Below are positions 768 through 47,697 of a DNA stretch of 64,000 nucleotides, piece after piece (position 1 is the first letter of the stretch; each line of letters opens with the position of its first letter). Source of the DNA: Penicillus capitatus. Taxonomy: Eukaryota > Plantae > Chlorophyta. The position numbers were made by a program, and so were the translations under genes. The notes below the pieces were generated by a model. It was not told the origin of the DNA. It saw only the letters and a list, made by a program, of their open reading frames with translations, and did not search any database. The DNA is taken from NCBI GenBank assembly GCA_965649825.1, contig OZ287695.1, forward strand, positions 372,001-436,000, given 5' to 3'.

Positions 768-3700
768 TCATGGCTTCAGCAGATCCTGGAGTTCTGTTTT
801 AGTTTGTTCCGTACACACATCGACGTGTGTACAGATAACGTCGTACGGTTTCTTGCCGTCGTCATTTTCGATTGTCTTGAGTTTCGTTCCCATCGAAGTA
901 TACACTAACGCCTACCGACACAGTTGTTATCGATCACGCCACCGAGTCAAGAACGCGGCTCACCTCGACCGACTCAATTTTTCCAAAGGATGCACCATAG
1001 TGCATCGCTGTGCTTCCCCCATTGTCCTTGGCGTCAACGATTGCACCGCTGTCCAGGAGAGTCTAAGGAAAACATCAATGCGGACTCTCCGAGTGCACGT
1101 CTTACTTCAATGATGTCTTCATTTCCTCGGGTTGTGGCATACATGAGAGGCGTCGTATCGTGTGGCGCCAGCCTATACTCAACATTGGCTCCACGTTTTA
1201 GCAGGAACTACAAAGTTCCACTGGATTAGAGAACGCAGAGGCTGTCACTGACAGACTTTGAGTGCTTTTCTGGAAATCTGATCTATTGCCTCGTAGAGAG
1301 CAGTTTCCCCAGCTCCATCCGGTTGGTCGATTTGCGCTCCGTTATCGAGAAGAAGCTTCGAACAGAGACAGATGGTCAGGGGAGGAGGACTGGCAGCAAC
1401 ACTGGCCTACTTCGACGATGTCCACATTATTGTTTCGTGTTGCTATGTGAAGGGCTGTATCTCCCGTCTGGGTTGGTTTCGTCGGATCGGCGCCGTTTTG
1501 CAGGAGAAACTGCACGTCACGTCTTCAATGACAACGAGTTGGCTCAGCTGTTTGGACTTACCTTCACAATGGCAGAGCTGTCGTCTTTGACGGCAACGTG
1601 AAGCACGTTCATTCCTCTGCGGTTCAAAGCAGATGTGTCCGCTCCTTTGTTGACGAGAACCTTCAAAGCACCCATTCATCAGAAGCATCGAAACAGATAC
1701 CGCCCTGACTTTGACAATCTCTGTGTATTCGTATTTGACTGCTGCATGAAGAGCAGTGTCAGCTGTTCTGTCGGCGATGTTGACATCTGCTCCGGCATCG
1801 ATGAATGCCTGCGGGCGAACAGCCTTCCGATAGGAAACTCAAGATAACAGTACAGGTATTACCTTTACAATCTCCAGATTGTTGTTCTCGACGGCAACGT
1901 GGATTGCTGACTTGTGATCGGCGTCAAAAGTGTCAACGTTGGCGTGGGCTGCAATGAGAATCTTCGAAGAGCAAGTGCATTAGAGCGAATGGCAGCTGAA
2001 GGAGGACTTACTGATACGATCTCTGTTTTTCCTAGTTCAGTTGCGATGAAGAGTGCCGTTTTTGAATCGACAGCTGTGTCCATATTGATATTACTGCTGA
2101 CGAGTGCCTTTAAACAATGATCGTCAGGCAGAAACTGAAAATAGGCTTGTCAGCTATACCTTTGCCATCTCAACGTATCCATTCTCCACTGCGATGTGGA
2201 GCGGGGGCTGCTGCTTGTCGTTTTTGCCAAGATTAGCATCTGCCTTAGCTTGGATGAGCATCTGTGGACAACAACTGTCGGCACACAGGCGATGAAGAAG
2301 TGTCACGCGCCTTCACGATCTCGAGGTTATTCTGTTGCACTGCAATGAGGAGAGGCGTCTTATCATCGACGATAGTATTCACTTCGACACCATTCAAGAT
2401 GAGCAACTGCAAACCAATCGTTGCCGAATCAGTAAGCGGCAATACATATGAAGGTTTACTTTTGTGATATCTGGGTATTTCTTTTCGACTGCCGTGTGGA
2501 GAACGGTCCAACCTGTTTCGCTGGGAATATTAACATCTGCTTTGGCTGCGATGAGTTCCTGCGATCGACGTTTATCAGATCAAGGACTGGAGACATGACA
2601 TGGTCTCACCGTTGCGATCTCTGTGTATCCCGTCTCAACTGCGGCGAAGAGTGCCGTTCTTCCATCGACGATTTCATTCAAATCAACTCCGCGCTCGATC
2701 ATTTTCTGAAACAACACAAAGTCGAGCCAGAAACTCAAACGAAATCTGTCTCACCACTACAAGTCCCTTGGATCCCTTCAGAACGGCGTCGTAGAAGAGC
2801 GATTTTCCCTCACCGGGGACAGTCACATCAGCCCCCTCTTCGACGAGGTACTTCACGAAAACAAAAGCCGTTAAAACATGGATACAGAGACATTGCCGGT
2901 ACTTCTGCAATCACTGTCTGATCTGTTTCACATGCAAGCTGTAGAGGTGTTTTCCCGGCACCAGGAGCGTTGATATCAGCCTTGTTTTTGATGAGAGTCT
3001 ATGCAGCGCTCATGGTGAACAGGTTTGTCTGTTTCTGGCACACCTTTGTTATTCCGACGAACTTTCCCATCACCGCTTCGTGCAGTGCCGTCTTTCCGTT
3101 GTTGGCGGGAATATTCAGATCAGCATTCACATCGATGAGGGCCTGTAGCACAGCACGTCGCGATCGGATTTCTGTGACGGTCAAATTCGGAGTTACTGTT
3201 AGGGATGACGTGATGTTCTTCATCGCGGACACGTAAACAGATGTGCGTCCTTCAGCGTCGACACGGTTTACATCGGCGCCTCCATTTGCAAGAACCTGGA
3301 AACAACATTGATAGTCGAGATCAGAAATCAGGATATCAATCTGCAGCGCCGCTGCACAAGTATTACCCCTATGCTTTTTGTTGCCTCGTGGACGGTGGCC
3401 CAAAACATCAGCGTTGATTTGTCAGCAAGGCCGCCCGTCGTCAACTCTGCTTTGTTGAGAAAAGTATCGGGGTGCAGTTTGTTTTGAAGAAGCTCATCAA
3501 CTGTAGCAGATTTGTCATCTTTGATAGCCGCGATTATCGCCTAGTGTTCAATGAAATTTATATGAGATGAAGAAAGTGGCTCTGGTTTACGATGTAACGA
3601 CCATCAGTTGAACCAAGAGAAGGAGTAGGCTCCGGCGAAGGGGTCTCGACGGGCAACGGTGGTGTCTCGGATTCAATTGGAGGCTCCGGCGAAGGGGTCT

Positions 3701-5244
3701 CGACGGGCAACGGTGGTGTCTCGGATTCAATTGGAGGCTCCGGCGAAGGGGTCTCGACGGGCAGCAGCGGTATCTCGGATTCAATTGGAGGCTCCGGCGA
3801 AGGGGTCTCGACGGGCAGAGGTGGTGTCTTGGAGACAATTGGAGGCTCTGGCGGAGGGGTCTCGACGGGCAGAGGTGGTGTCTTGGAGACAATTGGAGGC
3901 TCTGGCAGAGGGGTCTCGACAGGAGGTGGTGTCGCTGGCGGTTCCTCTTTTTTGGGACATTTCTACAGAGAACAGCGACACATGTAAGGATTTCGCATTC
4001 GAAACAAAATCCTGAGATGTAGCCAAGTTGTAACCCAGAATGGAAATGTGAGATGGCATAGAGCACATGACCTACCTTGCATTTTTCGCAGAGAAATGGA
4101 TCTGACGGGAGGGGTGATGGCTTCTCCTTTATCTTGCACTCGCTTGGTGGAGTCTTGCCAGCCATCGTCTCCAGAATCCAGTCTCTGTAGTACGAGATGC
4201 TCGTCAGAACATTACAATCCCTGTAATAAGGAAGGTAAGGATCATAAGATGTGACACCGACCAACAGATCCTCGCCGGGATATCCCTTGCCGACATCGCA
4301 TGGTCCATCTGCCACCACAACAGGACCTCCGTCCAGACCTTGAAGCACACGAGCACTAAGGTTCAGCTTGGTGTTCTGCCTCACACCTGTTTTATCATTT
4401 TCATCTTTTCCGCAAAAGCAGAGCCAGCCATCTCTGGGGACGTCCCCACTCTGGCTTCGACATCGCCCTTTCCAAGCCGGGTAAAGCGACAGGTAGCTTT
4501 GCGTCCCACAGATGTCCGATCTGCCGCCGCCGATTTCCCATCCAGGCATCAGCATGTCCTTTTCTCCGTAGACCATCCCTCTTCGAAACAGCCTTGGCGT
4601 TTCCAGGTGTGCCGCTTTGTCAAGTTTGAGCATGGCCAGGTCGGAGCCTCTCTTTACGTTCCCCGTCCAGCCACTGTGGATGTAGGCGTCTTTAACGTGG
4701 AATCTCTGTCGCCGAACACAGCGGATTCGACCGCGGCGTCTCGCCTGCGACGACGGCTTACCTTCTTGGAGGACGTCGTGTTGATATGGTAGATCCCGCA
4801 GTACACCGTCGGGTAGCACCCGACTGAACCCTCGTGGTTCGGGTCGACGCAGTGCGCCGCCGTCAGGACCCATCGTTTGTTAACGAGTGTGGCCGTGCAC
4901 TCGTGGTTTCGGCTTCCGGCCAGTCGCAAACTGCATAGGTACGGAAATCTTCCTGGTGAACCTTCAATCCTGTGGCACAGCCCGTTCTCGTCGTCGGTCA
5001 CATCGCCACTCAACGGCGCGGAGATTTTCTCGTCTCCGTTCGAGATGAGCGAAAGGAACCCGTCGCGGCGGCCGAACCCTGGACAAAGCAGCGTTAGGGT
5101 TGACGGCAGGATGCCTTCGACGGCACCTGAACTGGCGAATGTTGGGCTCGGGCCACAGAGCAAAACGCAGAGCAGCAGAATCGAAAACGCATGGTCCTTT
5201 TTCTTGAGACAGCACGGCCCGAACAAACGCACGTGTTCAAGCAT
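768..5244 (-). CDS. Trypsin-ankyrin fusion copy 1: signal peptide, catalytically dead S1A domain, Pro/Glu linker, about 16 ankyrin exons, Cys cap; carries a 1-nt frameshift near 2660
   Basis: ATG 5244 MLEHVRLF...AFSILLLCVLLCGPSPTFA. Motifs WVLTAAHC and DLAMLKLD. Spliced DKT-GLDGGP replaces GDSGGP. Ankyrin exons end in phase-0 GT donors. Last exon ends ICTHVDVCTEQTKTELQDLLKP* (TGA 770-768). One ANK exon is 95 nt versus 96 nt in copy 2. Confidence 0.85.
3627..3935 (-). repeat. 54-bp coding tandem repeat (about 5.7 units) encoding ETPSPEPPIESETPPLPV in the linker of copy 1
   Basis: ggctc(c/t)ggc recurs at 3628, 3682, 3736, 3790, 3844 and 3898 (period 54 = 18 codons). The minus-strand frame between protease and first ankyrin reads as a Pro/Glu/Ser/Thr repeat. 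Confidence 0.9.
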
Positions 5245-11289: not shown

Positions 11290-14200
11290 TTACGTTCTCC
11301 CAGGAACGAATGGTTTTATCTTCAAGAGTTCTGCGAGATCATCCCGAACTTTTTTCGCGCATGCCTCTTTCTGGCAGATAACTTTGTAAGGAGTATCTCC
11401 CTTTTTGTTCTCGATTATCTTAATCCTCTTTTCCGGTGCCGCTTTCTCCAGCAGCGTCTATAGAGGTAGTTATGATCAAGCCGAGTGATTGAGATTCGGC
11501 TCACCTTAGCAGCCTTGCGTTGTCCGTGACGAGCGGCATAATGAAGTGCAGTGTTACCGTTGCGGTCAACGGCGTCGACCTCCGCTCCGTGGGCGATGAG
11601 TATCTTAGAAAACAGACATCGATGCAGACAGCGTCTAAAAATTCGGATCGCACTTCAATCATCCTCTCATTTCCTTCTTCGGCGGCCAGCATAAGGGGCC
11701 TCTTTCCAATTCTCTTCATTCCGAACTCGATATCGGCTCCATGTTCCAGCAAGGCCTACATTGTCCCACTGCGCGAGAAACCTCAGCGATTGTTACTGGC
11801 ATACCTCCAGTGCAGGGCCGGAGTTCTGATCTGTTGCAACGCAGAGAGGAGATCGCCCTTTCTCATCGGGCTCGTCAATTTTTGCTCCTTTGTGGAGAAG
11901 TGCCTTCGAACATCGACCGTCAGAAAGGACCAGAAAAACGACACTGGCCTACTTCAATAATATTGACCCTTCCTCTTCGAGCCGCAAGGTGAAGTGCTGT
12001 ATCTTTCGTTTCAGTTCTTAGTTTTGGATCGGCGCCATTTTTGAGGAGAAACTGCACGTCGAATGAGTCTTCGCCTCTGCTTGGATAAACATACCTTTAC
12101 AATCTTACAGTTTTCGGTTTCGACGGCAATGTGCAGCGCGTTCATTCCATATCCATTCCAAGACTTGGTATCTGCTCCTTTCTCAACAAGAACCTTCAAA
12201 GCACTTGTCCGTCAGAAGCATTTGAAACGGATGTCATCCTCACCTCGACAATCTCTGCGAATTCGCCTTTTACGGCTGCGTGCAGAGCAGTGTTATCCGA
12301 TGTGTCGACGATGTTGACATCTGCTCCAGCATCGATGAATATCTGTGGTGGGCAGTCGTCAGATCAGAAACGCAGAATGAGATAGGTGGTACCATAACAA
12401 TATAGGTGAAGTTCTTCTCAGCTGCAAGGTGGAGGGCGGTCTTATGCTCAGCGTCGAATGTGTTGACGTCAGAGTCTGCTGCAATGAGAATCTTCAAATG
12501 TTAGAGGATTAGCCAGAATCACAATTGAAGCAGGATGTACCGATACAATTTTGGCGTTTCCTAGTTCAGTTGCGGTATAGAGTGGCGTCTTTCCATCCAA
12601 AGAGGTCGCATTCACACTTGCGTTACCTTCGATGAGTGCCTACAATCAAGTATCGTAAGCTACAAACTGAGGTTAATTATGTCATCCGCACTATGACAGT
12701 TTCAATATATCCCTTCTCCACTGCGATGTGAAGTGGGGTCTGTTGTTTGTCGTTGATATAGTAATCAACGGCTGCGTGCGCTTGGATAAGCATCTTCGAA
12801 CAATAACCATCAGCACGCAGTCTATGACGAAGTGTCATTTACCGTTGCAATCTCTGTGTGGCCCTCTTCCAAGGCAATAAGAAGAGGCGTTCGCTTGTCA
12901 ACTACAGCATTCACTTTGGCGCCGCTTTCAATAAGCAACTGCAAACCAATGACAGTCGGACCAGAAAGGAGTGATGTGTTCTGGTGCTCACTTTTGTAAT
13001 ATCTGGGTACTTCTTTTCAACTGCGATGTGGAGAACGGTCCAGCCTGTGGCGCTGGGAATATTAACATCGGCATTGGCTGCTATGAGATCCTGTATCGGC
13101 ATCAATTTGGATCAAGGATTCGAAACAAGACAGGGTCTCACCGTTGCGATCTCTGTGTATCCCATCTCAACTGCGGCAAAGAGTGGTGTTTTTCCATCGA
13201 CGATTTCATCCACATCAACGCCGTGCTTGATCATTTTCTTGAACAACAGAAAGTCGAGACAGAAACTCAAACGAAATCTGTCTCACCAATACGAGTGCCC
13301 TGGATCCCTTTAAAACGGCATCGTAGAAGAGTGATCTTCCCTCACCGGCGACAGTCACATTAGCCCCCTCTTCGACGAGGTACTTCGAAGAGACAAAAGC
13401 CGTTTCGGAAAATGGATGCAAACATTGCCGGTACTTCTGCGATCATTGTCTGATTTGTGTCCCATGCAAGCTGCAGAGGTGTTTTCCCGGCACCGGGGGC
13501 ATTGATATCAGCTTTGTTCTCAACGAGAGTCTATGCAGCGCTCATGGTGAACAGGTTTGTCTGTTTCTGGCACACCTTTGTTATTCCGACGAACTTCCCC
13601 ATCACCGCTTCGTGCAGTGCCGTCTTTCCGTTGTTGGCAGGAATATTCAGATCAGCATTCACATCGATGAGAGCCTGTATCGCAACACGTCGAGATCGGA
13701 TATCTGCAGAGGATCGAATTCGGAGTTACTGTCAGGGATGACGTGATGTTCTTCATCGCGGACAGGTAAACAGATGTGCGTCCTTCAGCGTCGACACGGT
13801 TTACATCGGCGCCTCTGTTTGCAAGAACCTGGAAACAACATCGATAATCGAGATCGTGAAGCATGATGTCAATCCGCAGCGCCGCTGCACAAGTATTACC
13901 CCTATGCTTTTTGTTGCCTCGTGGACGGTAGCCCAAAACATCAGCGTTGATTTGTCAGCAAGGCCGCCTGTCGTCAACTCTGTGTTGCTGAGAAGAGTAT
14001 TGGGGTTCAGACTGTTTTGAAGAACCCATAGGACCATGTCAATGTTGTCCTCATTGATTGCCAGTATTATAGTCTAACATCCAATAAGATAAATCGATGG
14101 TGCAGACAGTGACATTTCTCACGTTGTATAGTTTTTTTGGAGGATAAACCGGCCTAGCCGGCAAAACAGGTGATGGCGTCGGCGAAGTCTCAGACGTAGC

Positions 14201-15598
14201 ATCCGACGTTGATGTTTTCTTAGGTGGAGTCTTCTTGTGTGGAGGAGGCGTCTTAGGAGGAGTCTTCTTAGGTGAAGGCGTCGCTGGCGGCTCATACTTT
14301 TCTTTGGGACACTTCTACAGAAAACAACGCGCGTATGAGCATTCGCATCCAAAACAGTATTTTGACAGGTGGTTGAGCCAGCAACCAGGATAGAGATGTG
14401 TGATGTGACAGATAGCACAGGACCTACCTCGCATTTTTCGCAGAGATGTGGATCAGATGGGAGTGGCGGCCACTCTTTCACGTTGCACTTGCTCGGCGGA
14501 GTCTTGCCAGCCATCGTCTTCAGAATCCAGTCCCTGTAGTACGCGACGCTGGTTTGAATCGAACACTCTCCGTATCCCTGAGGCTCGGGATCGAATGACG
14601 TGACGCCGACCACCAGATCCTCGCTGGGAGTCCCCTCTCCAACAGCGCACGGCACATCGGCCAACACAAGGGGACCCCCGTCCAGACCTTAAAGCACACG
14701 AGGATAGAGAGATGGCCGGTTTGGATGTCCCACCCTCCCACCTGTCTTCTGCTCAGCCTCTTCCCCGCAGAAGCAGAGCCAGCCGTTTCCCGGGACTTCC
14801 TTGCCCTTGCCTCGACACTCTCTGCGCGGAGACCGGTGCATCGACAGGTAGCTCTGATATCCGCAGCTGTTCGAACTGCCGTCGCCGATTTCCCATCCAG
14901 GCGTCAGCATGTCCTTCTTTCCCAGAACCATTCCATTCCGAAACAGCCGTGGCGTCTTCAGACGCGCCGCCTTGTCAAGTTTGAGCATGGCCAGATCAGA
15001 GCCTCTGGAGACGTTCCCCGTCCAGCCTCTGTGGATGTAGGCATCTTCGACGTGGAATCTCTGTCGCCCAACGAAGCCAGATCAGCCACAGCGTTTCGTC
15101 CGTGATGGCTCACTTTCTTCTCAGTGGTCGTGTTGACCTGATAGATGCCGCAGTACACAGTCGGGTAGCAGCCGACGGAGTCTTCGAAGTTCGGGTCGAC
15201 GCAGTGCGCCGCCGTCAGGACCCATCGCTCGCCGACGAGTGTGGCTGTGCACTCGTGCTTCCGGGTACCGGCCATTCGCAGACTGCATAGGTACGGAAAT
15301 CTTCCCGGAGAACCTTCAACTCTGTGACACAGCCCGTTCTCGTCGTCGGTCACATCGCCGCGCGACGCCGTCGAGATTTCCCCGTCGCCGTAGGAAACGA
15401 GCGAAACGAATCCGCCTCGACGGCCAAACTCTAGACAGAAGCAGTCTTAGGGTCAACCGGCATGATACCATCGATGGCACCTGAACTGGCGAATGTCGGG
15501 CTGGGCGCACACAGAAACGCGCAAAGAAACAGAATCGCAAACGCGCGACCCTTTTTCTTCGGACGGCAGGACGCGACTGAACGAACATGTTCAAGCAT
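11290..15598 (-). CDS. Trypsin-ankyrin fusion copy 2: signal peptide, dead S1A domain (GLDGGP), Lys/Pro/Thr linker, ankyrin array, Cys cap
   Basis: ATG 15598 MLEHVRSVASCRPKKKGRAFAILFLCAFLCAPSPTFA. WVLTAAHC. Spliced EQKT-GLDGGP. The ANK exons checked are in frame. Ends VICQKEACAKKVRDDLAELLKIKPFVPGRT* (TAA 11292-11290). Confidence 0.88.
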
Positions 15599-18962: not shown

Positions 18963-21900
18963 TCATGGAGTCAGCAGTTTGATAAGGTCCCTCCGAGTCT
19001 TTTCGGAACAATGAGCATCCGGATTAGAACAAACGTATGCGAGAGGAGTTTTTCCTTTGTCGGTCAAGCTCAACCTCGATGCTCCAGCACCAACGAGGAT
19101 CTAGATAGAGTCACCTGCTAGGCAGCGAGGCATTCCGGCTTACTTCAGCAACGTTCAGATGACCGCTATATGATGCCAGATGAAGAGGTGTCCAAGCGGC
19201 ACTTGTCTTGGCGTCCAAATCGGCGCCAGCTGCGATCAGCACCTGCGACCGTCCATCATAGAGCTGATCGATCGCTGCAGAGACCGGACCTTTGCGATGT
19301 CGGTGTAACCGTATTGTAATGTCGTATGCAAGGGAGTGTGACCGGTGTTCGACGAGGCATTCACATCGGCACCGGCTGCGATCAGCACCTGCGACCGTCC
19401 ATCATAAAAGCTGATCAATTGCTGCAAGGACCGTGACCTTTGCGATGTCGATGTGACCGTATGCTGATGCCATGTTCAAGGGAGTGTGACCCTTGTCTAT
19501 CTTGGCGTTCACATCGGCGCCGGCTGCGATCAGCACCTGCGACCGTCCATCATAGAAGCTGATCAATCGATGCAGAGACCGGACCTTTGCGATGTCGATG
19601 TGACCGTATTGTGATGTCGCATGCAAGGGAGTCCAGCCAGTGTTCGACGTGGCGTTCACATCGGCACCGGCTGAGATCAGCACCTGCGACCGTCCATCAT
19701 AGAGCTGATCGATCGCTGCAGAGACCGGGACCTTTGCGATGTCGATGTGACCGTATTGTGATGTCGCATGCAAGGGAGTCCAGCCAGTGTTCGACGTGGC
19801 GTTCACCTTGGAACCGGCTTCAATCAGCACCTGCGACCGTCCATCGTAGAGCTGATCGATCGCTGCAGAGACCGGACCTTCGCGATGTCGGTGTAACCGT
19901 ATTGTGATGTCGTATGCAAGGGAGTGTGACCGGTGTTCGACGGGGTGTTCACATCGGCACCGGCTGCGATCAGCACCTGCGACCGTCCATCATAAAAGCT
20001 GATCAATTGCTGCAAGGACCGTGACCTTTGCGATGTCGATGTGACCGTATGCTGATGCCATGTTCAAGGGAGTGTGACCCTTGTCTATCTTGGCGTTCAC
20101 ATCGGCGCCGGCTGCGATCAGCACCTGCGACCGTCCATCATAGAAGCTGATCAATCGATGCAGAGACCGGACCTTTGCGATGTCGGTGTAACCGTATTGT
20201 GATGTCGTATGCAAGGGAGTCCAGCCAGTGTTCGACGTGGCGTTTACATCGGCACCGGCTGCGATCAGCACCTGCGACCGTCCATCATAGAAGCTGATCG
20301 ATTGCTGCAAGGACCGGGACCTTTGCGATGTCGATGTGACCGTATGCTGATGCCATGTGCAAGGGGGTCGAGCCAATGTTCGTCCTGGCATCCACATCGG
20401 CGCCGGCTTCGATTAACACCTACAGTATCTCTTCGACAAGAACAGATTATCGGTCTTATCGCTCACTTTGACAACTTCGAGATGTCCTTGGCGCGATGCT
20501 ATATAGAGAGAAGACCAGCTTTCTTTGTTGGTGGCACTAATGTCAGCTCCAGCTGCGATAAGAACCTTCTCCATTCCTTTCCAGCGACATAAAATGCTCT
20601 TTGGGGACGCACTTTGACGACTTCTGAGTGTCCGTGGTAGGATGCAATGTGGAGCGGAGTATCTCCTTTGACGTTCTTGATGTCGGTGTCCGCTTTGTAC
20701 TTCAACAACACCTGAAAGCACAGACAGACAGCTGGATGGATTGCATGCAAGCACAGCGTTCTGGACATCTTCTGATGCACTGATTTGTTCATTGCACCTC
20801 TGCGCATTTTGATGCGTCGAATGCTGCAGCCAAGTGCAGCGATGTCGATCCCTCTAGCATCTCATATTCCGGTGTGCTCATATCATGACCGTAGGTCGTG
20901 TCGACATCCAAACCGGCTAAAAGAAGCGCTTCTGCATCGAGTGCACTGTCCCCTCGAATGGCGACGACCATCTTCTGCAAAGACAAGATGCATTCGAACT
21001 CTCGTAAGCTAATGAGCTTACGGTGAGCATCTCTGAGTGAGTCATCTTGGCGTGATGTGTGCGTTTTTCGTCGAATCTCTTCGCCCCTCGCTTCTTGCGA
21101 CTTCGACGCTGCATGCACTCCGTATTCAGCAGTCCATAGATGTGTTTGCTTCAGATCACACCTTTTTCGTGCGATCGCTGCCGGTGATGCTTTCTATCCA
21201 GTCCAGAAAGTGGTCGACAGATGTGTAAACGGCTGGTTCTAAGCCGGAGCACTGTTGGGACTCGTCGTCCGCGTAGCCGTACGACGTGATGCCAACGATC
21301 ATGTCTCTTTTTGCATTCCCAGCAGCGATCTTGTCGTTCGGAGCGTCCACCAACATCAGAGGACCGCCGGAGTCGCCTAGCAGACAATCGCAACGACTCA
21401 CCCTCGGATCAGTTAAAGTCCATTGCCAGGGCACTGACCTTGACATGTGTCCTGTAAAAGCGCTCCGGCGCAGATCCAGCTGTCCTCGTCGACTCCTTGA
21501 GGTTGCTCTTTGCATGATTTACGCGCGACAACGGCAATTCTGTCAGCCAAGCGCAAAACGTGTGAGTGATCCGCGGATTCTGTACGTCCCCATCCTGTTG
21601 CAGCCAACAGCTTTCCGCGCCTCAGTGGAACGTCCCCCGAGCCCAAACGCGGCAGTGTAAGGTTGGCCGCCTCTCTGTCGAGCTTCAGCACTGCAATGTC
21701 AGATCCGTTGATGACATCGCCTGTCCAGTCGTTATGGATATGGCCATCAATGACATCGAACACCTGCATGTCACACGGCGTTCGTTCGACCTGATTGAAG
21801 AGAAGTGTAGAATCAAATCACTCACTTTGTCCTCGTCCACCTTGTCCTTCAGGTCATAGATTCCGCAGTAGACGACGGGGGACATACCCAGGGTTTTTTC

Positions 21901-22318
21901 TCCTTCGGGGTCCACGCAGTGAGCCGCCGTCAAAATCCATTGCGGCTTGATAAGCGTCGCCCCGCAGGCATGCGAATGGCTTCCGCGTTCACGCATGCTG
22001 CACATGTACGGAAATCTTCCACGCTTCGCTTTTGCGCCTCCCTGTAGCACACGGCTCAGATAATGACGGTTGAGATGCTTCCGCGTCGATAGACGCACCA
22101 CTATCTTCGCGTAGATGTCGTTGGACGCCTCGCGCCATCCTTGTCCTAGAAACGCGTCAAATGGACGGATAATGGGAACTACGCTCACCCGTTTCCTGGC
22201 TGCCGTGAGTTGGCCACGACAGCAGGAGTAGCCACAAGTGTATTGCTAGGTGCGTCATTTCTGCCGCCTTTCTTTCCGGGCGTCGACGTCCCTTTTCTGA
22301 ACAACGGTGCTCGAGCAT
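18963..22318 (-). CDS. Trypsin-ankyrin fusion, predicted active protease, about 12 ankyrin exons plus Cys cap
   Basis: MLEHRC...MTHLAIHLWLLLLSWPTHGS signal. Spliced AK-IVGG activation site. WILTAAHC, DIAVLKLD, spliced QDTCQ-GDSGGP. Ends YVCSNPDAHCSEKTRRDLIKLLTP* (TGA 18965-18963). Alternative start at 22258. Confidence 0.9.
19234..20420 (-). repeat. Tandem exon+intron units of about 147 bp (99-nt ankyrin exon plus about 48-nt intron) with a 588-bp higher-order duplication
   Basis: gatcagcacctgcgaccgtccatc (or a close variant) recurs at 19234, 19380, 19528, 19675, 19822, 19968, 20116 and 20263. Units at 19380/19968 and 19528/20116 are near-identical, introns included (offset 588). Confidence 0.92.
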
Positions 22319-22400
22319 TGTGTTTGCTGGGAAATGAAGCTTCGCGAACGATGCAGAACAATGGTCGCAAGACGCACCATTACGTACGTACATACATACT

Positions 22401-23395
22401 TTGGAAGTACGGGTCGTTCGAGTCAAATGCAGCACGAGCAACACCCGAGTCGTCAGTGCAAAGCTGCTCGACGGCGACGTCGTTGGTCTGCCCTTTCTCC
22501 GTTCCCGTGGATTCACTTACACACCGAGCCAGTACGTCTTCATCCGCTGCCCTCAGATTTCCCGATTCGAGTGGTACCCGTTCTCGCCGATGTCAAGTCC
22601 CGGAGACTGCTATCTCGGCGTCCACGTGCGCAAGGCTGGCGACTGGACGGCGGCGTTGCATCAACTGGTGGAGGAACACGCTCGCAGGAGGACTGGATCC
22701 TGTTCGGAGAACAGCGGGACGTTCTCTGTGTGCTCGAGATACCACGTCAAGCCTGTGCTCGACGAGTTCAACGTCGTCAAGCGATTCAATTTCAGCATCT
22801 CTGTGGATGGGCTTATCGGCGCCCCGCGCAGAACTATGCTCCCGATTGCAAGGTCATTGTGCTCATCGGCGCCGGAATCGGCGTCGCTCCTTTCGCATCG
22901 GTCCTCACCGATCTGCTCGATTCGCTCAAACAGTGCGCCTGTCCGAAGTGCGGCTACAGCAATCCGCACCTGATGCGCACCCGTATCAAGAAGGTCTACT
23001 TCTACTGGACAGTGCGATCGCGATCCGAAGCATCCTGGTTCAAGCATCTCCTGGAGGCCATCTCGTTGCGCGATGAAGACAGTCTGCTGGACATCCACGT
23101 GAACATCACTGGTATCAAGCGCGCCGATGACCCCAGGACGATGATGCTGCGCCTCGCGCAGTACGAAAGCGGCGAGCCTTCGACATCGGACGCCCATTCC
23201 CGCACCGTCACGCGCTTTGGCCGCATAGACTGGAACGAAGTTTTTGAGAAGGTCAAAGTCGACTTCCCGTGCGAACCGAGTGTGGGAGTTTTCTACTGTG
23301 GTCCCAATACAATCGCAAAGATCCTCGACAAAATGTGCCGACAGAACAGCAGAGGGCCGACAAAATTTCTGTTCATGAAAGAGTCGTTTGGGTAG
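22401..23395 (+). pseudogene. RBOH: 5'-truncated, frameshifted NADPH oxidase (RBOH/NOX) FAD- and NADPH-binding fragment
   Basis: FTYTPSQYVFIRCPQISRFEWYPFS..SSPGD..LGVHVRKAGDWT, then a frameshift at about 22827 into AQNY..VIVLIGAGIGVAPFAS...KKVYFYW...GVFYCGP...KESFG*. No transmembrane heme domain upstream. No introns. Confidence 0.88.
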
Positions 23396-27998: not shown

Positions 27999-30900
27999 TT
28001 AGGTCATTTTGTGCGTAGGGAATTCGTTCTTCAAGTACCTCTTGATTTCTTTCGCAGCGACACGCGTACACTTACGGTTGCGTTCTGCGGCTGTGCACAC
28101 GATATCGCGAGGGAGCTTGTCCTCTGCGTTCTTCATCGTCCTGGACGCCCCGCCCTCCTCGATAAGGATCTGTCACATCATTCGCATCGTCAGAGCCCAG
28201 ATTCAGAATGCAGACCGTGTACCTGAACAGCTCTCTCGTTGCCGTACTTTGCGGCGTAATGAAGTGCGGTCATCTGATCGCTGTCGACGGCGTCCACTTC
28301 TGCCTCTTTCTCGATGAGACTCTTCACGGGCAATCATCTGCATCGTGCTGCACAGAGGTCGAGGCTTACTCTTATGATCGAGTCAGATCCCCCGATAGCC
28401 GCCAGCATCAGCGCCGTCTTATGCTTCAGATCTTCGGCATTGACATTCGCACCACGTTCGACGACCACCTGTCGGTTTCGCAAATACAACGACGGTTGCG
28501 AACGGCTCAGCATACGTACGTGTACAACGGATCTGTGATCACTGTTGGCCGCGACGAGAAGAGCGGTCCTTCCATCGGAATTGGCCTCTTCGATGCCTGC
28601 CCCGTATTTGAGAAGGACCTTCAGGAATGGCCGTCGTCATTTTGCAGTCTGGAGACGGAAACAGCTTCACCTCTACGAGATGAGCAGAGCCATGGCGCGC
28701 TGCGTAGTGAATAGGGGCTCCCCAATAGCACTGGGCATTCACGTCTGCTCCGTATTTCAAGAGCAGCTACACGTTTCCATAGCCCAAAGCGTTTTGGCGT
28801 GCCGCTGGTCGTACCTCTGCTATGTCGACGTATCCCTCGTCGGATGCAATATGAAGTGGCGTCTGTTTGTCCTCGTTGGCGACATCCACCGTGGCTCCCG
28901 CCTCTATGAGTTCCTTCGAGGGGAGTTCGTCAATTCAGAAGCTCCGACAATGGCTGGCTATCTTACTCTTGCGATCTCCGCTCTTCCGTTAAATGCCGCA
29001 ATGTGGAGTGCCGTTTCTTCCCTGTAGTCCGCAGCGTCGAGGGAAACACCGCTCTGGATGAGCGCCTTCAGACAACGACATCATCTATCGGGCCCTTCAG
29101 AACGTCAGCCAGACGCACCGTCACATCCAGTTTCTGTCCAGTAAACGCAGCCATATGAAGTGCCGTCTGTTTCTTGGAACTGGCAGCATTGACGTCGGCA
29201 CCTGACTTAAGCAATAACTACAAGCATCGACAGTCAGTTGTCCCTTCCAGCACATCCGTTGATCGTACGAAGATGATTGCGGATCTTCTTCTTCTGATCG
29301 CGTGATGCAGTGCCGTATAGCGTCTTCTGTCCGTCGCATCGATGGAGATCCCTTGCCGAATAAGCGCCTTCGAACAACGATAGCCCATTCGCATGTCTTA
29401 GTGCGTCTCGGGGATACCTCTACGGAGTCAATCTGTCCTTCGTCTACTGCGATGTGAAGCGCCGTCTGTTTCTTGGAATCGCTGGCGTTGATGTCGGCTC
29501 CTGCCTTGACGAGTTTCTGCAACGGATCGCCACTTATGCATTTCGGTTTTCAGAACATTCAGTGTTCTCACTCTGATGATCGCGACGTTCCCCATAGCGG
29601 CGGCAATGTGCAGTGCCGTCCAACCGTCGGCATTGCCAGCGTTGATCGAAGCGCCTGCACTGGCGAGCACCTTCAATGAAGCGCCGCCATTTACGAACGC
29701 GTACCGAGTGCATTTGCCTCACCTCTATGGCATCCGTCTGTCCGTTTGCTACAGCAAGGTGCAATGCTGCCTGTCCGTCGTTGTCCAAGGCATCGATTTC
29801 CGCTCCCTTGGCGATGACAGCCTGCCGAGAACACTCTTCGATGGACATGCACGCAGGACAAGCACTTGACGCACTTTCATGGTCTTTGTGTGCCCTCCTG
29901 CCGTTGCAACGTGAAGCGCCGTCTGACCGTGAGCATTGACGCTCTCGATTGGTGCCCCCAAAAGCAAGAGTGCCTTTAGCAACCCCGTCATCAGTGGTTG
30001 GGAAGTCTGAACGTGTGTCGGCCGCACCTTCACCGTCTTAGTCTCTCCGTTCGCTGCTGCCAAGTGCAGGGCTGTCTGTCCATCGCTATCGAGCGGGTCG
30101 ATCGTCGCTCCTCCGTCGACGAGTTCCTGCATTGCACCGTCTTAAGTTCACTAGCATTCCATACCCGCACAGATCTCGCCTCCATCGTCTTTATGTGTCC
30201 GCTAGCTGCCGCCACGTGAAGCGCCGTCTGGCCCTGAGCGTTGAAGCTGTCGATTGGTGCGCCCAAACGAATGAGCTCCTGGAAGGTCACATCATCTGTA
30301 CATAAGAGAGTCCTTGTGCTTGTCGAACGCACCCTCATCGTCTCGATATGTCCATTTGCCGCTGCCAAGTGCAATGCTGTCTGTCCGTCACCATCAAGCG
30401 CATTGATCGTCGCCCCTCTGTTAATGAGCTCCTTCAAATGACCGTCTTGCCTTCACGACCTCCCAAGGAGAGTAACGGCTCTCACTGTCGTGGTCTCTGT
30501 GTGTCCGTTCGCTGCCGCAACGTGGAGTGTTGTCTGTCCATGAGTATTGACACTGTCGATCGGTGCCCCAGCAGCAATGAGCTCCTTCAAGGGTCGCCCG
30601 TGGGCCAAACGCCAAATGTGAGTAACGGAGGCACCTTCACGGCATCCGTTTGTCCATCTGCTGCTGCGAGGTGCAATGCCGTCTGTCCATCACCATCGAA
30701 AGCCTCGATCTTCACGCCTTGCCCGAAGAGCACCTTGGATGAACCACCACTGACCCGCCATCACACGACACGAGCATCGCTAGCACCTTCATCGTCTTTG
30801 TATGCCCGTTGGCCGCTGCGACGTGAAGCGCCGTCTGACCCTGAACGTTGACGCTGTTGATCGGAGCCCCAGCGCCAACGAGCTCCTTAAAGGTATAGCC

Positions 30901-33504
30901 ATCAGGACGTAGAAATGCGGATGGTGTGTCTAACGCACCTTTAGGGCATCGGTTTGTCCATTCGCTGCTGCGAGGTGCAGGGATGTCTGTCCATCGCCAT
31001 CGAGAGCATTGATCCTCGCCCCTTTATCGATGAGCACCTGCAGGTGCCGCCTTGAGCACACGATTCTCAGAGCAGCGACGGTCTCACTCTCATCGTCTCT
31101 GTGTGTCCGTTTGCTGCGGCAACGTGAAGTGGCGTCTGATAACGAGCGTTGTTGCCGTCGATCGGTGCCCCCACACGAACGAGCTCCTTCAAAGTCACAT
31201 CATCCGTTTGTGAGATCTGCGAGATGATCATCTGTCCTACGCTTGTCATGTGCGTCTGTCCACTTTCAACAGCAATGTGCAAAGCCATCTGTCCGGCAGC
31301 GTTCAGGGCATCGATCACCGCGCCAGCGTCGATGAGTTTCTGCAGGAAAGCGCCGTTCGTTGATGACATCAAAGAGACATGGGCGCGACCAGTGCGATTT
31401 CGACGTTGCTCTTTTCCACCGCGATATGCAGCGGCATGTTTCCGCCACTCGCTGCGTTGACATCAGCTTCGTTGTCGATCAGCACCTGCAGGCATGTGTA
31501 CGGAACACAGAATTTGCCAAGGCCTCTTGGATATACCTTGGCTATTTCGTCGAACTCTTTCTGCACTGCCGCAAACAGTGGCGTCGATCCGTCGTTGCTG
31601 GCAATGTCTAGGTTCGCACGGAAACGGATGAGAACCTGCGAAAGGGCGTGTTGCCTGAAGAGAGGAACAGACGTCATTCATTCTGAGTTACTTTGGCGGC
31701 GTCGATTCCATTCGTCGCCGCAGCGATGTACAGACTTGTGTGTCCACTGGAGTCGGCAGCATCGACATCAGCACCGTTCTCCAGAAGAATCTAGACGCAA
31801 TACAGCGAGGGCAAGGAATGAGCAGGTCGGCGGAAGATGGCTGGACTGTTGTCGGTGTTACCTGCATGATCTTCAGCGCTTTGCTGATAACGGCGTAGTG
31901 AAGCAGCGTCGCGCCAGAGGCGAGATTGGCACTTGATGCCGTCTCTCTGTGGTGGAGCTCGACGTCGGCGCTCAAGCCCTGTTCTAAGACCAAGAGGGCG
32001 GTGTCAGGATCATGGTCCCTGATGGCAACGATCATTTTCTGAGGGGCAGCGAAAGAACTTGGAGATGGCATAGCGCTGGTGTTTGCGTACATTGTACTTT
32101 GACTCTGGCGATGGAGGCGGGGGAGATGGGGAAGGAGCCGGCTGTTGCGATGTCGAAGGAACTTCCGAGGGGAAAGAAGGTTTCTTCTTTGTTGTCTTTG
32201 TCTTCTTCTCACACGTCTAGAGTAACAGACATGCATACAGTCGACATTGGCCATCGAAAACGCGTAGAGTCCTGGCAGGTGGTTGAGCCAGCAACCAGGA
32301 TAGAGATGTGAGATGGTGGATAGCACAGGACCCACCTCGCATTTTTCGCAGAGATGTGGATCAGATGGGAGCGGCAGCCACTCTTTCACGTTGCACTTGC
32401 TCGGCGGAGTCTTGCCAGCCATCGTCTTCAGAATCCAATCCCTGTAGTACGCGACGCTGGTTTGAATCGAACACTCTCCGTATCCCTGAGGCTCGGGATC
32501 GAATGACGTGACGCCGACCACCAGATCCTCGCTGGGAGTCCCCTCTCCAACAGCGCACGGCACATCGGCCAACACAAGGGGACCCCCGTCCAGACCTTAG
32601 AGCACACGAGCGCTGAGGTTCAGCTGGGCGTCCCACCCTCCCACCTGTCTTCTGCTTAGCCTCTTCCCCGCAGAAACAGAGCCAGCCGTTTCCGGGGACT
32701 TCCTTGCCCTTGCCTCGACACTCTCTGCGCGGAGACCGGTGCATCGACAGGTAGCTCTGATATCCGCAGCTGTTCGAACTGCCGTCGCCGATTTCCCATC
32801 CAGGCGTCAGCATGTCCTTCTTTCCCAGAACCATTCCATTCCGAAACAGCCGTGGCGTCTTCAGACGCGCCGCCTTGTCAAGTTTGAGCATGGCCAGATC
32901 AGAGCCTCTGGAGACGTTCCCCGTCCAGCCTCTGTGGATGTAGGCATCTTCGACGTGGAATCTCTGTCGCCCAACGAGGCCGAATCAGCGACAGCGTTTC
33001 GTCCGTGATGGCTCACTTTCTTCTCAGTGGTCGTGTTGACCTGATAGATGCCGCAGTACACAGTCGGGTAGCAGCCGACGGAGCCTTCGAAGTTCGGGTC
33101 GACGCAGTGCGCCGCCGTCAGGACCCATCGCTCGCCCACGAGTGCGGCTGTGCACTCGTGCTTCCGGGTACCGGCCATTCGCAGACTGCATAGGTACGGA
33201 AATCTTCCCGGAGAACCTTCAACTCTGTGACACAGCCCGTTCTCGCCGTCGGTCACATCGCCGCGCGACGCCGTCGAGATTTCCCCGTCGCCGTAGGAAA
33301 CGAGCGAAACGAATCCGCCTCGACGGCCAAACTCTAGACAGAAGCAGTCTTAGGGTCAACCGGCATGATACCATCGATGGCACCTGAACTGGCGAATGTC
33401 GGGCTAGGCGAATACAGCAACGCGCAAAGCAATAGAATCGCAAACGCGCGACTACTTTTCTTGAGACGGCACATTCTACTTGAAAAAACGTATGATGCAA
33501 ACAT
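27999..33504 (-). CDS. Trypsin-ankyrin fusion copy 3: dead S1A domain (GLDGGP) with the longest ankyrin array (about two dozen exons)
   Basis: ATG 33504 MFASYVFSSRMCRLKKSSRAFAILLLCALLYSPSPTFA. WVLTAAHC. Spliced KQKT-GLDGGP. Linker SQQPAPSPSPPPPSPE. Ankyrin exons from about 32.0 to 28.2 kb. Ends IVCTAAERNRKCTRVAAKEIKRYLKNEFPTHKMT* (TAA 28001-27999). Confidence 0.87.
29700..31350 (-). repeat. Alternating A/B ankyrin exon array in copy 3
   Basis: Exons alternate between a ..ID/NALDGDGQTALHLAAANG.. type and a GAPID/N..NA.GQTALHVAA..GH type, at about 150-nt spacing (about 300-nt dimer period). Confidence 0.8.
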
Positions 33505-36234: not shown

Positions 36235-37692
36235 CTACACCACACGTGCATCGTTGGCAGGCGTGGAGGTCGTTGGCTTACGTGGCGGCTCGAAGACGTC
36301 TTCGAACGCCGCCGGCAGTTTCTCCGCCATCAAGAGCATCGTCCGAGTGGCATTGGTCACCCGACCCACGCTGGCCCGCAACGGAAACTTTGTGCAGTGA
36401 TCGCCGAAGGGATTGTCCAAAAGGGTGTGCATATTCAGAAGTCCTTGGTACGTCACATTCGCCATGGTCATCAGTACATAGCACCAGAAAATCATCCAGA
36501 CGCTCGTCTGGATATCGTCATCTGACTTCTTCGCCGCGCCAGCTCCGCCGCCAAAGAGCTCACCCAGTCGACCCGTGTGCAAAAAACTGCCAAACCAGGT
36601 GGCCAGTACCATGAGATAGACGTGGACAACGAAAGAGACGAGATGGACATAGGGATACGGCATCTGGGAGTTGATGGTATTGATGATGGAGGTGCCAGCC
36701 TCGACGATGCCGTTGATCTTGTTCAGCAGCAGGGGCAGCATCTGCGGAGCGGCGACGAGCCATTCTGCCGCCTTGCATCGGTTCACGAGAGACTGCGTCC
36801 AGTAGTATACCATCTCAAAGGCGGCCATACCATCGTTCTCGGCATCGTTAAGCAGCTCCCATTCATCTCGATTCATCAACCCCTCGCTGACCATGTTGTC
36901 AAACGTGAGGAGATTACGCGGTTTTTGCAGGGCCTTGGCGTAAACGGGCGAACCGGACTGTACGGAGAAGGTCGTGTTGAGGCCCTGATTGCGGATTCTG
37001 TGGAAGGACGATTTCATGGAGTCGACGAGCGATCGCAGACCATACGCCTTCTTATACCCTTCATTCTGCGCATCCGCCTTGGCAAGCACAAGCAGATGGC
37101 CCAAATTGAGCAGACGTGTGATTTCGGTCCGGGCGCGTTGGACACGGAGGTCTTCGGCGTTCTGCGGATTCTTGATCGTGTTGGCCACTATCATGCAGAG
37201 ATCCGTCGTCGTGCCCATGAGCTTCGCATAGGCCGCACGGATACTCCACCAGCGATTGACGACGAGGGTGATGAAGAGACCGAGGGTGAAGATGACGAGC
37301 ATGCCACAGTTGAAGATGCCGCCAATGTAGGGCGTGCCAAACATGGTGACCAATGTCGCAAGGTCGTCGTCGCGGACACCGAGTCCCGTGATGTGAATCG
37401 CCGCCATCCACAGTAACAAGGCATAGTTCTGTACGTGGAGATAGATGTCGGCGAAGACGGTCGCCTTCCAGTTGCGCATAACGGCCATCGGAATCCATCC
37501 GTAGTAATGCAAGTGTCCGGGGCGGTACTTCAGAACGCGGTCGGGGTGATGCTGCCAGAGGATGTCGCGCTTGGGCATGGCATGGGTGGTGACGCGCTTC
37601 TGCTCGACGGTCTTGCGCGTCTGGCTGCGGAAATGAAAATCCTCGCGACGGCGATGCGTGCTGTCTTGCACATTATCGAACGGCGACGCCAT
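36235..37692 (-). CDS. Bestrophin-family anion channel (intronless)
   Basis: LVIFTLGLFITLVVNRWW, MPYPYVHLV and LLDNPFGD motifs, with several hydrophobic helices. ATG at 37692 preferred; an in-frame upstream ATG exists at 37842. Confidence 0.88.
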   Translation of the reverse strand: MASPFDNVQDSTHRRREDFHFRSQTRKTVEQKRVTTHAMPKRDILWQHHPDRVLKYRPGHLHYYGWIPMAVMRNWKATVFADIYLHVQNYALLLWMAAIHITGLGVRDDDLATLVTMFGTPYIGGIFNCGMLVIFTLGLFITLVVNRWWSIRAAYAKLMGTTTDLCMIVANTIKNPQNAEDLRVQRARTEITRLLNLGHLLVLAKADAQNEGYKKAYGLRSLVDSMKSSFHRIRNQGLNTTFSVQSGSPVYAKALQKPRNLLTFDNMVSEGLMNRDEWELLNDAENDGMAAFEMVYYWTQSLVNRCKAAEWLVAAPQMLPLLLNKINGIVEAGTSIINTINSQMPYPYVHLVSFVVHVYLMVLATWFGSFLHTGRLGELFGGGAGAAKKSDDDIQTSVWMIFWCYVLMTMANVTYQGLLNMHTLLDNPFGDHCTKFPLRASVGRVTNATRTMLLMAEKLPAAFEDVFEPPRKPTTSTPANDARVV

Positions 37693-37840
37693 GGTGCCGC
37701 GCTCGGGGACGTCGAATGGCAACGAACAAGGCGGGTGGTAAAGATGCGTCTCGGCAAAGATGCGTTCGTTATGTGATGATGATGACAATGTCCGAAGTAC
37801 ATGCGTCAACGGTGGTGCGTGGGTGGGTGTATTGATAGCC
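37693..37840. promoter_or_regulatory. Short divergent intergenic region, bestrophin / kinesin
   Basis: 148 nt between the head-to-head start codons at 37692(-) and 37841(+). Confidence 0.55.
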
Positions 37841-46484: not shown

Positions 46485-47697
46485 AATAGGGAGGGGGGCG
46501 TCGAGAGATGCCTGTGACAACGGCTGACTGTAGTTGACGTCCATTGTTGTAGCTGTCAAGTGTAAATGCGATACCCTTGTCGGAAAGCGGCAGGATCGTA
46601 AAGATCAGAAGTCGGTGAAACGGTGAAATGACAGGGTCATGTCAGATGCGAAGGGAACGGAAACGACTCCTGTCACATGTGACGTGACGGGTATGTCGGG
46701 AGCAACTTTGCCGGTTCGTCGACGTCGCCATACACAGTGGCGGAACCTGAACACAACCGACGAGACACACGTAGAGACCAAGTGCTCATGGCTGCACGAG
46801 GATCCGTTTCTGCGAAGTCTCGGCGTGGTTGACGATGAATGTCACTCGGAAGATGACTTATCAGTGGCAATATTGAATCCTTTAGAAAGTATACCGTTCC
46901 TCAGTAGATCCGATACAGAATCGGCACTCGACCGTATTGTTCTCAAACTACAAATGAATTAAGCGCTGATGCGTCATGTGTTGTAAAAGATTATAAAAAC
47001 AGCCGTCGGCAACAATTCAGAGTGCTTAGTCACTTTTACCAACCACGCACGGTTTGCTGATCTCTATCTAGTCTGCGAAAAGTGAAACGTGTTGACTTAA
47101 GCTTTCCATCGCCAGAAGGAGATAGGTATTGAACGTGTCTTCACGATAAAAAGTAAGAAGCAAGGTCAGAGGTTGACGTATCCTTCATCACGTCGGGGAT
47201 TTAAGGCGCCGACTTTGTTCTCTGATGGAACCAAATGTTTCGATATATAATGCTTCGATACTCTGCGACAGACATTCCACCCTTCTGTCGGCTCCTTCTG
47301 CGAGAACTTCGATCCCAATTGCCTGCGACGCTGGATTTCTCGTTTAGTCAGCGAAACGGCTATCGAGGAGACGTTTGCGAGGAAGCCGACGCAAAACTTA
47401 TCATTTAAACAGAAGACAGTACATAGCTCAAACTATCTCCTTAAACATGCTCGGGAACGTCGCCCCAAAGACTCGAACTTACAAAAGACGGAATTGCGTT
47501 TCTAGGACATTTACACTAACGGATTCGAAGGATTTTGCTATTTATCTCCGTTGATCCGGTTTCCACGTGTGTGGCTCTTTTTTACTAGTTGAGGATTCTT
47601 ACGTAAATATTCAGAATCGAAATTATTAGTTGTTTTTCTTAGAGAACGAGGTCAAGTAGGTTTGCATTTCTCCCATGTTGTTTGTGCATGTCGTTTC

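Follow-up and report, generated by a model that had tools for sequence, protein, structure and literature searches.

S1-family pseudoproteases are a familiar feature of animals, and the clip-domain serine protease homologues (cSPHs) of arthropods usually carry glycine in place of the catalytic serine. In insects up to about half of the S1 genes are non-catalytic (PMC11172050), and cSPHs such as mosquito CLIPA proteins and Drosophila cSPH35/242 act as non-catalytic cofactors or regulators (PMC6901238, PMC10540698). Vertebrate S1 pseudoproteases, which include azurocidin/heparin-binding protein, haptoglobin, HGF/MSP and protein Z, re-used the fold for binding after loss of residues of the catalytic triad. 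Human protein Z has an acidic residue at position 195. In magnetotactic bacteria, MamO combines a trypsin fold with a degenerate triad and has gained metal binding (PMC4794232). No description of an S1 pseudoprotease in green algae was found, and literature searches on trypsin/ankyrin or serine proteases in Bryopsidales or siphonous algae returned nothing relevant. Here we analyze a 64,000-nucleotide (nt) window of Penicillus capitatus contig OZ287695.1 (assembly GCA_965649825.1, positions 372,001 to 436,000), which contains three trypsin-like genes, c1, c2 and c3, with an identical change at the active site. Probably these are intact, spliced genes for selected, secretory S1 pseudoprotease-ankyrin proteins, whose protease domain would serve as a non-catalytic binding module.

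The window is eukaryotic nuclear DNA in which eight trypsin-like loci were located by a six-frame motif scan and tblastn. Three minus-strand copies, c1 to c3, are called dead, c4 to c7 are of the active type, and c8 is truncated. The scan found GLDGG at 4339-4325, 14688-14674 and 32596-32582 and at no other position of the window. TAAHC and D-L-A-M-L-K-L occur in all three dead copies, and GDSGG(P) or GDSGSP in the copies at 21.4, 51.1, 57.9 and 62.9 kb. Gene models were built manually from three-frame translations, paralogue DNA alignment and splice-site positions, and ankyrin exon chains were built with exons restricted to about 99 nt. Residues are given in chymotrypsin numbering, taken from a protein alignment of all window copies. 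E1 to E4 denote the four protease exons. The features of the dead genes, in window coordinates, are:

768 to 5244, minus strand: gene c1, dead copy 1; 23 exons, 1093 amino acids (aa), open from the ATG to the stop at 768
4076 to 5244, minus strand: c1 protease part; E1 5244-5127, E2 5078-4762, E3 4705-4387, E4 4338-4076
4957 to 4971, minus strand: c1 R-I-E-G-S, replacing [K/R]-I-x-G-G; the activation-motif intron of the active copies is absent
4849 to 4860, minus strand: c1 A-A-H-C; His57 codon 4854-4852
4622 to 4642, minus strand: c1 D-L-A-M-L-K-L; Asp102 codon 4642-4640
4339 to 4386, minus strand: c1 intron 3; 48 nt, phase 1, inside the Gly193 codon, GT...AG ends conserved
4322 to 4338, minus strand: c1 former active site; (G)GT CTG GAC GGA GGT CCT, G-L-D-G-G-P
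4336 to 4334 and 4333 to 4331, minus strand: c1 Leu194 and Asp195 codons, from the spliced model and alignment
3591 to 3962, minus strand: c1 exon 5; Cys-Pro-Lys start, then P-V-E-T-P-x-P-E-P-P-I-x-S repeats
964 to 3540, minus strand: c1 ankyrin region; cap exon 3540-3367, then 16 one-repeat exons of 96-102 nt
11290 to 15598, minus strand: gene c2, dead copy 2; protease exons 15598-15481, 15430-15114, 15060-14742, 14687-14428
14741 to 14688, minus strand: c2 intron 3, followed by G-L-D-G-G-P at 14687-14671 (paralogue alignment)
13828 to 11350, minus strand: c2 ankyrin region; 17 exons, after a short Pro/Lys-rich linker
27999 to 33504, minus strand: gene c3, dead copy 3; protease exons 33504-33384, 33333-33017, 32963-32645, 32595-32336
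32644 to 32596, minus strand: c3 intron 3, followed by G-L-D-G-G-P at 32595-32579 (paralogue alignment)
31957 to 28062, minus strand: c3 ankyrin region; 26 exons, an array different from that of c2

The former active site is split by an intron. The span 4290-4400 holds the end of c1 exon 3 (...GAT AAA ACA G), the 48-nt intron at 4386-4339 and the start of exon 4. Exon 3 ends in ...GATAAAACAG, the intron runs from GTGTGA to TTCAAG, and exon 4 opens with GTCTGGACGGAGGTCCT, so that the predicted spliced junction of the manual model is ...GATAAAACAG/GTCTGGACGGAGG... and reads K-T-G-L-D-G-G-P. Intron 3 is in frame and stop-free in c1 only. It measures 54 nt in c2 and 49 nt in c3, with an in-frame TAA in both; because of these stops, and of the frame shift that 49 nt would cause in c3, splicing of intron 3 would be obligatory in c2 and c3. 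Gene c1 looks like one long open reading frame (ORF) because two of its introns are 48 nt long, stop-free and read through. Active c4 to c7 and all dead homologues have the phase-1 intron of the Gly193 codon at one and the same position. It measures 48-56 nt, with lengths that do not differ by multiples of three, and the acceptor directly before GT-CTG-GAC is kept in every homologue modelled. The first intron is likewise common to every homologue modelled, with 50 nt in c2 and c3 and an in-frame 48 nt in c1. Two 1-nt insertions relative to c1 after the signal peptide had made c2 and c3 candidates for frameshifted pseudogenes; this was rejected, as the 50-nt GT-AG intron restores the frame.

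The remaining five trypsin-like loci of the window are:

21162 to 22318, minus strand: c4, active, protease part, starting at about 22.3 kb; K/IVGG, TAAHC, DIAVLKL, DTCQ-GDSGGP
50193 to 51343, plus strand: c5, active, protease part; K/IAGG, DTCR-GDSGGP
57694 to 58829, minus strand: c6, active, protease part; R/ITGG, DTCK-GDSGGP
62215 to 63057, plus strand: c7, active-type, modelled from G-G onward; R/II-GG, DTCR-GDSGSP
54955 to 55744, minus strand: c8, truncated non-dead copy; I-V-R-G, with the His57 and Asp102 exons only and without the Ser195 exon

Introns in the window are very short and of the GT-AG type, mostly 43-61 nt with the longest at 113 nt. The active copies have the introns of the dead copies plus one, which splits the activation motif between [K/R]-I-x and G-G and is 57, 52, 50 and 56 nt long in c4, c5, c6 and c7, respectively. 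Locus c8 is a truncated duplicate of c6 (81% identity, 55055-56385 against 58140-59473). It reads I-V-R-G where I-x-G-G is expected and ends after the Asp102 exon, a picture of a genuinely degenerating copy within the cluster.

A first-pass annotation of this DNA had proposed that three copies keep His57 and Asp102, read K-T-G-L-D-G-G-P after splicing, and have exchanged Ser195 for Asp and Asp194 for Leu with loss of Cys191, next to four full copies with intact triads. The motif scan and the alignment with the four active paralogues bear this out, c4 to c7 being the intact copies and c8 an additional, truncated one. Where the active copies read D-T-C-[Q/R/K]-G-D-S-G-G-P, the dead copies have Lys191, Thr192, Leu194 and Asp195 and keep only Gly193. 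His57 (TAAHC) and Asp102 (D-[L/I]-A-[M/V]-L-K-L) are present in all of them. Asp194 is the residue that pairs with the N-terminus newly formed on zymogen activation. The activation segment has changed as well: the alignment shows H-R-[I/V]-E-G-S, with a four-residue deletion, instead of [K/R]-I-x-G-G-x-x-A-x-x-x, in agreement with the annotation, which had read R-I/V-E-G-S rather than IxGG. Relatives have K-E-E-G-Y or P-I-L-E-G-A at this position. In the substrate pocket, Gly216 is replaced by Asp (T-S-[Y/F]-D-P for T-S-[Y/F]-G), and residue 189 is no longer Asp; across the dead clade it is Asn, Glu, Ser, Lys or Arg. The dead copies also have extra cysteines, in G-L-C-H-R, S-V-G-C-Y-P, C-G-x-Q, W-L-C-F-C and G-P-C. 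Thus His57 and Asp102 remain, while Ser195 in G-D-S-G-G, the zymogen activation site with its Asp194 pairing, the S1 pocket and the Cys191-Cys220 disulfide are all missing. Judged from its residues, the dead domain is a pseudoprotease by every canonical criterion.

In spite of these changes the domain is recognizable. Against the Pfam Trypsin profile (PF00089) c1 scores 73 bits (cut-off 20.6, E = 4e-20) over profile positions 7-220. Because this match is significant, and because the identical change is found in three paralogues and in homologues from other contigs, chance is excluded as its source. A structure of the c1 domain was predicted with AlphaFold2 from an alignment of 25 sequences, made up of the window copies and database relatives. 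The model has a predicted template-modelling score (pTM) of 0.76, with per-residue confidence (pLDDT) of 85-97 in the N-terminal barrel and about 55-95 in the C-terminal barrel. Foldseek matched it in the Protein Data Bank (PDB) to plasma kallikrein, elastase, chymotrypsin and TMPRSS2 (E = 1e-15, target-normalised TM 0.76-0.81). A PDB sequence search returned the same families, including the pseudoprotease heparin-binding protein (1fy1). As modelled, the c1 domain is a two-barrel chymotrypsin fold.

Homologues were sought by a full HMMER scan of 1.8 billion representatives. Dead-type entries were ORF fragments on European Nucleotide Archive (ENA) genomic contigs only; with the 88-aa peptide of exon 4 as query, a word-indexed protein search gave 2 matches only. 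Seven sequences with complete protease regions were taken as the dead-clade set: c1 to c3, L002 and L007 from ENA sample ERZ26696514, and L004 and L005 from other contigs of ERZ25074695. The exon plan does not differ among the seven sequences, which come from two ENA samples and have open frames. E3 measures 319 nt in 7/7, and the introns are 48-61 nt and not in multiples of three. At the former active site L002 reads G-L-D-G-G-P, L007 G-L-E-G-G-P, L004 G-L-E-G-S-P and L005 G-L-E-G-A-P. The motif G-L-[D/E]-G-[G/S/A]-P is thus conserved across the dead clade, and two further sequences, L006 and L010, show G-L-D-G-S-P. Position 195 is always Asp or Glu and position 191 always Lys or Arg within the G-L-[D/E]-G clade.

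L008 (2744-3775), L009 (2486-3633) and L010 (2057-3023) are more distant members of the 'R-F-P-Y-L-C-S-L-R / G-C-Y-P' group, in which the motif was read from the sequence only, without gene models. L009 has G-G-A-G-S-P, with Ser195 changed to Ala, and L008 has G-E-S-A-H-P, with Ser kept and Glu at 194. The wider clade appears to have explored several states of the former active site.

In a protein tree the seven dead sequences form one clade (ultrafast bootstrap 100) on a stem of 1.6 substitutions/site, apart from the active copies of the window and from all named relatives. Domain identity between dead and active copies is about 30-36%. As the tree has it, the loss of Ser195 is a single event in the ancestor of a lineage-specific clade, conserved since. 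The ratio of nonsynonymous to synonymous substitution (dN/dS, omega) was estimated on the seven-sequence tree with a GY+F3X4 codon model over 320 ungapped codons, with kappa fixed. Omega is 0.313, and the log-likelihood (lnL) falls from -4892.5 to -4998.4 at omega = 1 (2*dlnL about 212). Pairwise values are 0.27-0.30 for c1-c2 and 0.31-0.33 for c1-c3. The first-pass annotation had named dN/dS within the dead clade as a check on retention; with 0.27-0.33 pairwise and 0.31 on the tree, a value of 1 is strongly rejected. Genes c2 and c3, which make up a young pair, differ at 10 of 896 exon nt in E2-E4 (1.1%), with dN/dS 0.31. Their intron 1 is identical, intron 2 differs by 7.5% and intron 3 by 24.5%. 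Relaxed selection was considered on the strength of the c2-c3 dN/dS over the whole coding sequence, 0.68-0.79, and rejected, this value being due to exon 1, part of which falls beyond the converted tract. The splice sites and frames are intact and the dead motif is conserved in homologues, which upholds the annotation's view of a retained dead subfamily with open frames and its own ankyrin arrays. By these substitution patterns, the dead subfamily is maintained under purifying selection and is not decaying.

All three dead proteins share one order of parts: a signal-like N-terminus, the S1-like domain, a Cys-rich tail, a Pro-rich linker and an ankyrin array of 17-27 repeats. In Pfam the c1 model gives Trypsin at 79-306, Ank_2 (PF12796, E = 3e-98) and PF00023 (E = 8e-89). 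The trypsin-ankyrin fusion is a predicted one, resting on manual splicing. The N-terminus, judged as a signal peptide by eye and hydropathy only, is the sole strongly hydrophobic segment of c1, and an N-T-T sequon is conserved in the dead proteins. Because of the signal-like N-terminus, the many cysteines, the sequon and the proline-rich stalk, we infer a secretory localization. The c1 linker is built on a 54-nt (18-aa) unit, present in 5.4 copies at 3627-3920. On an ENA contig of the same organism as c1 (ERZ25074695 ctg340412, 28x) it has one unit fewer, in frame, and there are 3 substitutions; by this difference, the window belongs to another haplotype or assembly than the ENA contig, and linker length is polymorphic. 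Short linkers of unrelated sequence are present in c2 and c3.

The ankyrin arrays are encoded one repeat per exon (96-102 nt) in all three genes, with phase-0 introns of about 43-58 nt; in c1 these are 43-55 nt, with 71 nt after the cap exon. Because this layout is symmetric, repeats can be duplicated, lost or skipped in frame. Downstream of c4, at 19209-20421, a 147-nt unit is repeated in tandem (8.2 copies, 84% match; also periods 295 and 441). The period is as long as an ankyrin exon together with an intron, and the array looks like recent unit duplication at the DNA level. The 22 introns of c1 measure 43-113 nt, 21 of them GT-AG and one GC-AG. The latter is intron 13, whose donor at 2311 is GC and not GT (AAG/GCGCGT), and L006, on a contig with only 1.5x coverage, may hold a second GC donor (AAG/GCGAGA). 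From these sites, GC-AG introns seem to be used in this genome.

The three genes differ in how far their likeness extends. Gene c2 matches c1 over the whole gene, at 77-80% identity. Gene c3 is 96% identical to c2 only at 33471-32273 (against 14363-15568 in c2), a stretch that starts inside exon 1 and stops shortly after exon 4; on the promoter side, in the linker and in the ankyrin array, c3 bears no relation to c2. Because the identity is confined to the protease module, c3 appears to be a recombinant or converted gene, in which a c2-type dead domain sits on another ankyrin gene.

The nearest named relatives of the protease domains come from Bryopsis, Ostreobium and Caulerpa. Two S1-ankyrin proteins of Bryopsis sp. 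KO-2023, GMH36736.1 and GMH36921.1, have an N-terminal Trypsin domain followed by ankyrin repeats, as c1 to c3 do; CAD7699406.1 of Ostreobium quekettii and g5119.t1 of Caulerpa lentillifera are related S1 proteins. These are the closest relatives with a name, at 30-36% domain identity, and come from clustered genes annotated as hypothetical or unnamed. All keep G-D-S-G-G-P, like c4 to c6, whereas G-L-[D/E]-G is found only on unnamed ENA metagenome contigs. From this comparison, c1 to c3 are a lineage-specific dead branch of an uncharacterized S1-ankyrin family of the Bryopsidales. Trypsin and ankyrin domains are also joined on Logan contigs of 2.6-3.8 kb (including P0011 and P0019), in ORFs of 566-979 aa that have no interruption and look transcript-derived. 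In another Ostreobium quekettii protein, P0015 (EP00803_P007559), which has two S1 domains, the second reads E-G-V-Y-G-G-P at the active site; by its sequence, another bryopsidalean has lost the catalytic serine independently.

Several other sequences lie between the protease genes. A single-exon bestrophin ORF of 569 aa with PF01062 relatives is found at 36235-37944 (minus strand), and its best named matches are from Bryopsis sp. KO-2023 (49-52%) and Ostreobium quekettii (46-48%). Together with the protease relatives it identifies the host, on sequence similarity, as a bryopsidalean (siphonous) green alga. By eye, a long ORF at 22307-23395 (plus strand) has an NADPH-oxidase/ferric-reductase-like C-terminus, and an ORF at 39156-40082 (plus strand) is kinesin-like. 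A 25-nt tandem repeat (9.8 copies, 97% match) at 47693-47937 lies in a stretch that looks non-genic.

This setting does not fit the arthropod immune cascades in which the first-pass annotation had placed the genes: the relatives are bryopsidalean algae, and Pfam finds no clip domain in c1, returning only Trypsin, Trypsin_2 and Ank families. The arthropod cSPHs and the vertebrate S1 pseudoproteases may nevertheless be the functionally nearest analogues. Like the dead copies, cSPHs have the S1 fold without the Ser195 nucleophile, have active paralogues alongside and are retained by selection. They are extracellular, as is predicted for the dead copies. cSPHs differ in having an N-terminal clip domain and in needing activation cleavage, whereas the dead copies have neither a clip domain nor a canonical cleavage site, and the change of Ser to Asp/Glu, Leu at 194, C-terminal ankyrin arrays and a green-algal host set the dead copies further apart. 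Vertebrate pseudoproteases usually also lose His57, while the dead copies strictly keep His57 and Asp102; their partner domains are kringle, EGF/Gla or CCP, where the dead copies have an ankyrin array. MamO resembles the dead copies in its degenerate triad, but it is a bacterial HtrA-like protein with a di-histidine metal site, and the di-histidine motif was not seen in c1 to c3.

Four other explanations were weighed. That c1 to c3 are decaying pseudogenes, with open frames left over from a recent inactivation, would account for the missing nucleophile and for the c2-c3 whole-coding-sequence dN/dS of 0.68-0.79, and the truncated c8 proves that such copies occur in the cluster. The high c2-c3 value comes from exon 1, however, with 0.31 in E2-E4, and the clade-wide omega of 0.31 (2*dlnL = 212 against omega 1) points the other way. 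Open frames and good splice sites are seen in each of the 23 c1 exons and in the c2 and c3 exons that match them, and the dead motif and the exon plan recur in divergent homologues from another sample, which makes decay highly improbable. Hardly any credence is given to a splice artefact, that is, to another exon or acceptor restoring G-D-S-G-G in the mature messenger RNA. It can draw only on the gene models being without complementary DNA (cDNA) backing. The first-pass annotation had named a splice that restores GDSGG as an outcome that would refute it, but none of the six reading frames of 768-5244, 11290-15598 and 27999-33504 encodes GDSGG, so that no alternative exon can restore the active site. 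The acceptor of the models is conserved in every homologue modelled, at the position it has in the active copies.

The two remaining explanations concern the role of the dead proteins. As decoys, an option raised by the first-pass annotation, they would vie with the active paralogues for the same Arg/Lys substrates, or for inhibitors. They are indeed co-clustered with four active trypsin-type paralogues that carry Asp189, and they share with these the architecture of signal peptide, S1 domain and ankyrin array. With residue 189 now Asn, Glu, Ser, Lys or Arg, Asp in place of Gly216 in all members, a very long stem and only about 30-36% domain identity to the active copies, however, the substrate cleft is unlikely to mimic that of the active enzymes, and we regard a decoy function as doubtful. 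Alternatively, His57, Asp102, the carboxylate at 195 and Lys/Arg191 could form a rebuilt catalytic or metal- or ligand-binding center. The invariance of His57 and Asp102 and the restriction of 195 to Asp or Glu in the G-L-[D/E]-G clade, despite near-saturated synonymous divergence, speak for such a center, as does the constant Lys or Arg at 191; MamO, a trypsin-fold pseudoprotease with direct metal binding, is a precedent (PMC4794232). Yet neither the oxyanion-hole/activation machinery (Asp194, Ile16) nor the S1 pocket (Asp189, Gly216) has survived, and the TAAHC block may persist for structure, with Cys58 forming a disulfide. An acid at 195 is also not essential for the wider clade, because the distant relatives L009 and L008 are without it. 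To our knowledge there is no S1 enzyme with a carboxylate at 195, which counts against this explanation too, and overall it seems unlikely.

The explanation that we consider probable remains that of intact genes for selected pseudoprotease-ankyrin proteins. Ser195 was lost once, in the ancestor of a lineage-specific clade, and a burst of change on the long stem followed. Purifying selection has since maintained the clade, across speciation, tandem duplication and gene conversion. The chymotrypsin-fold domain would act as a non-catalytic binding module presented with an ankyrin scaffold, most plausibly as an adaptor, cofactor or regulator that works with, or acts on, the active S1-ankyrin proteases of the cluster or the targets of these. 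The loss and variability of Asp189, the Asp at 216 and the great length of the stem make a new binding specificity likelier than mimicry of the substrate cleft; for this reason a role as adaptor, cofactor or regulator is ranked above that of a decoy. Several points weigh against this explanation. The gene models are manual. A transcript-derived dead-type protein was not found among the 150 best representatives or the clusters looked up, and a search of JGI metagenome contigs with the spliced junction ARACAGGTCTGGAMGGRGGTCC gave 0 matches. On the deepest branches (L004/L005 against the rest) dS is near saturation and omega approximate. Ankyrin repeats behind a signal peptide are unusual. The site, with His57 and Asp102 invariant and 195 always acidic within the G-L-[D/E]-G clade, may still do chemistry or bind a metal or ligand instead of being inert, and the function assigned to the dead proteins is pure inference.

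The dead genes do not establish a new principle; they place a selected S1 pseudoprotease in an unusual host and architecture. They offer a clean natural example of the re-use of a protease fold, in which a loss of Ser with a single origin was followed by clear purifying selection. The conserved replacement is itself unusual, with Asp/Glu for Ser195 and Leu for Asp194 while His57 and Asp102 are retained. The genes also draw attention to a family, so far unexplored, that duplicates rapidly and encodes each ankyrin repeat in an exon of its own; the whole siphonous-algal S1-ankyrin family is annotated only as hypothetical proteins. Wound healing and the handling of microbes in this host group are poorly understood at the molecular level. 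It is conceivable, though improbable, that the dead domains have a rebuilt ligand, metal or catalytic site and that the dead and active S1-ankyrin proteins of the cluster act in an extracellular proteolytic cascade of these giant coenocytic algae. If so, the cascade might serve, for example, in wound-plug formation or microbe surveillance, and it would be a convergent counterpart of the arthropod clotting and melanization cascades with their non-catalytic serine protease homologue cofactors.

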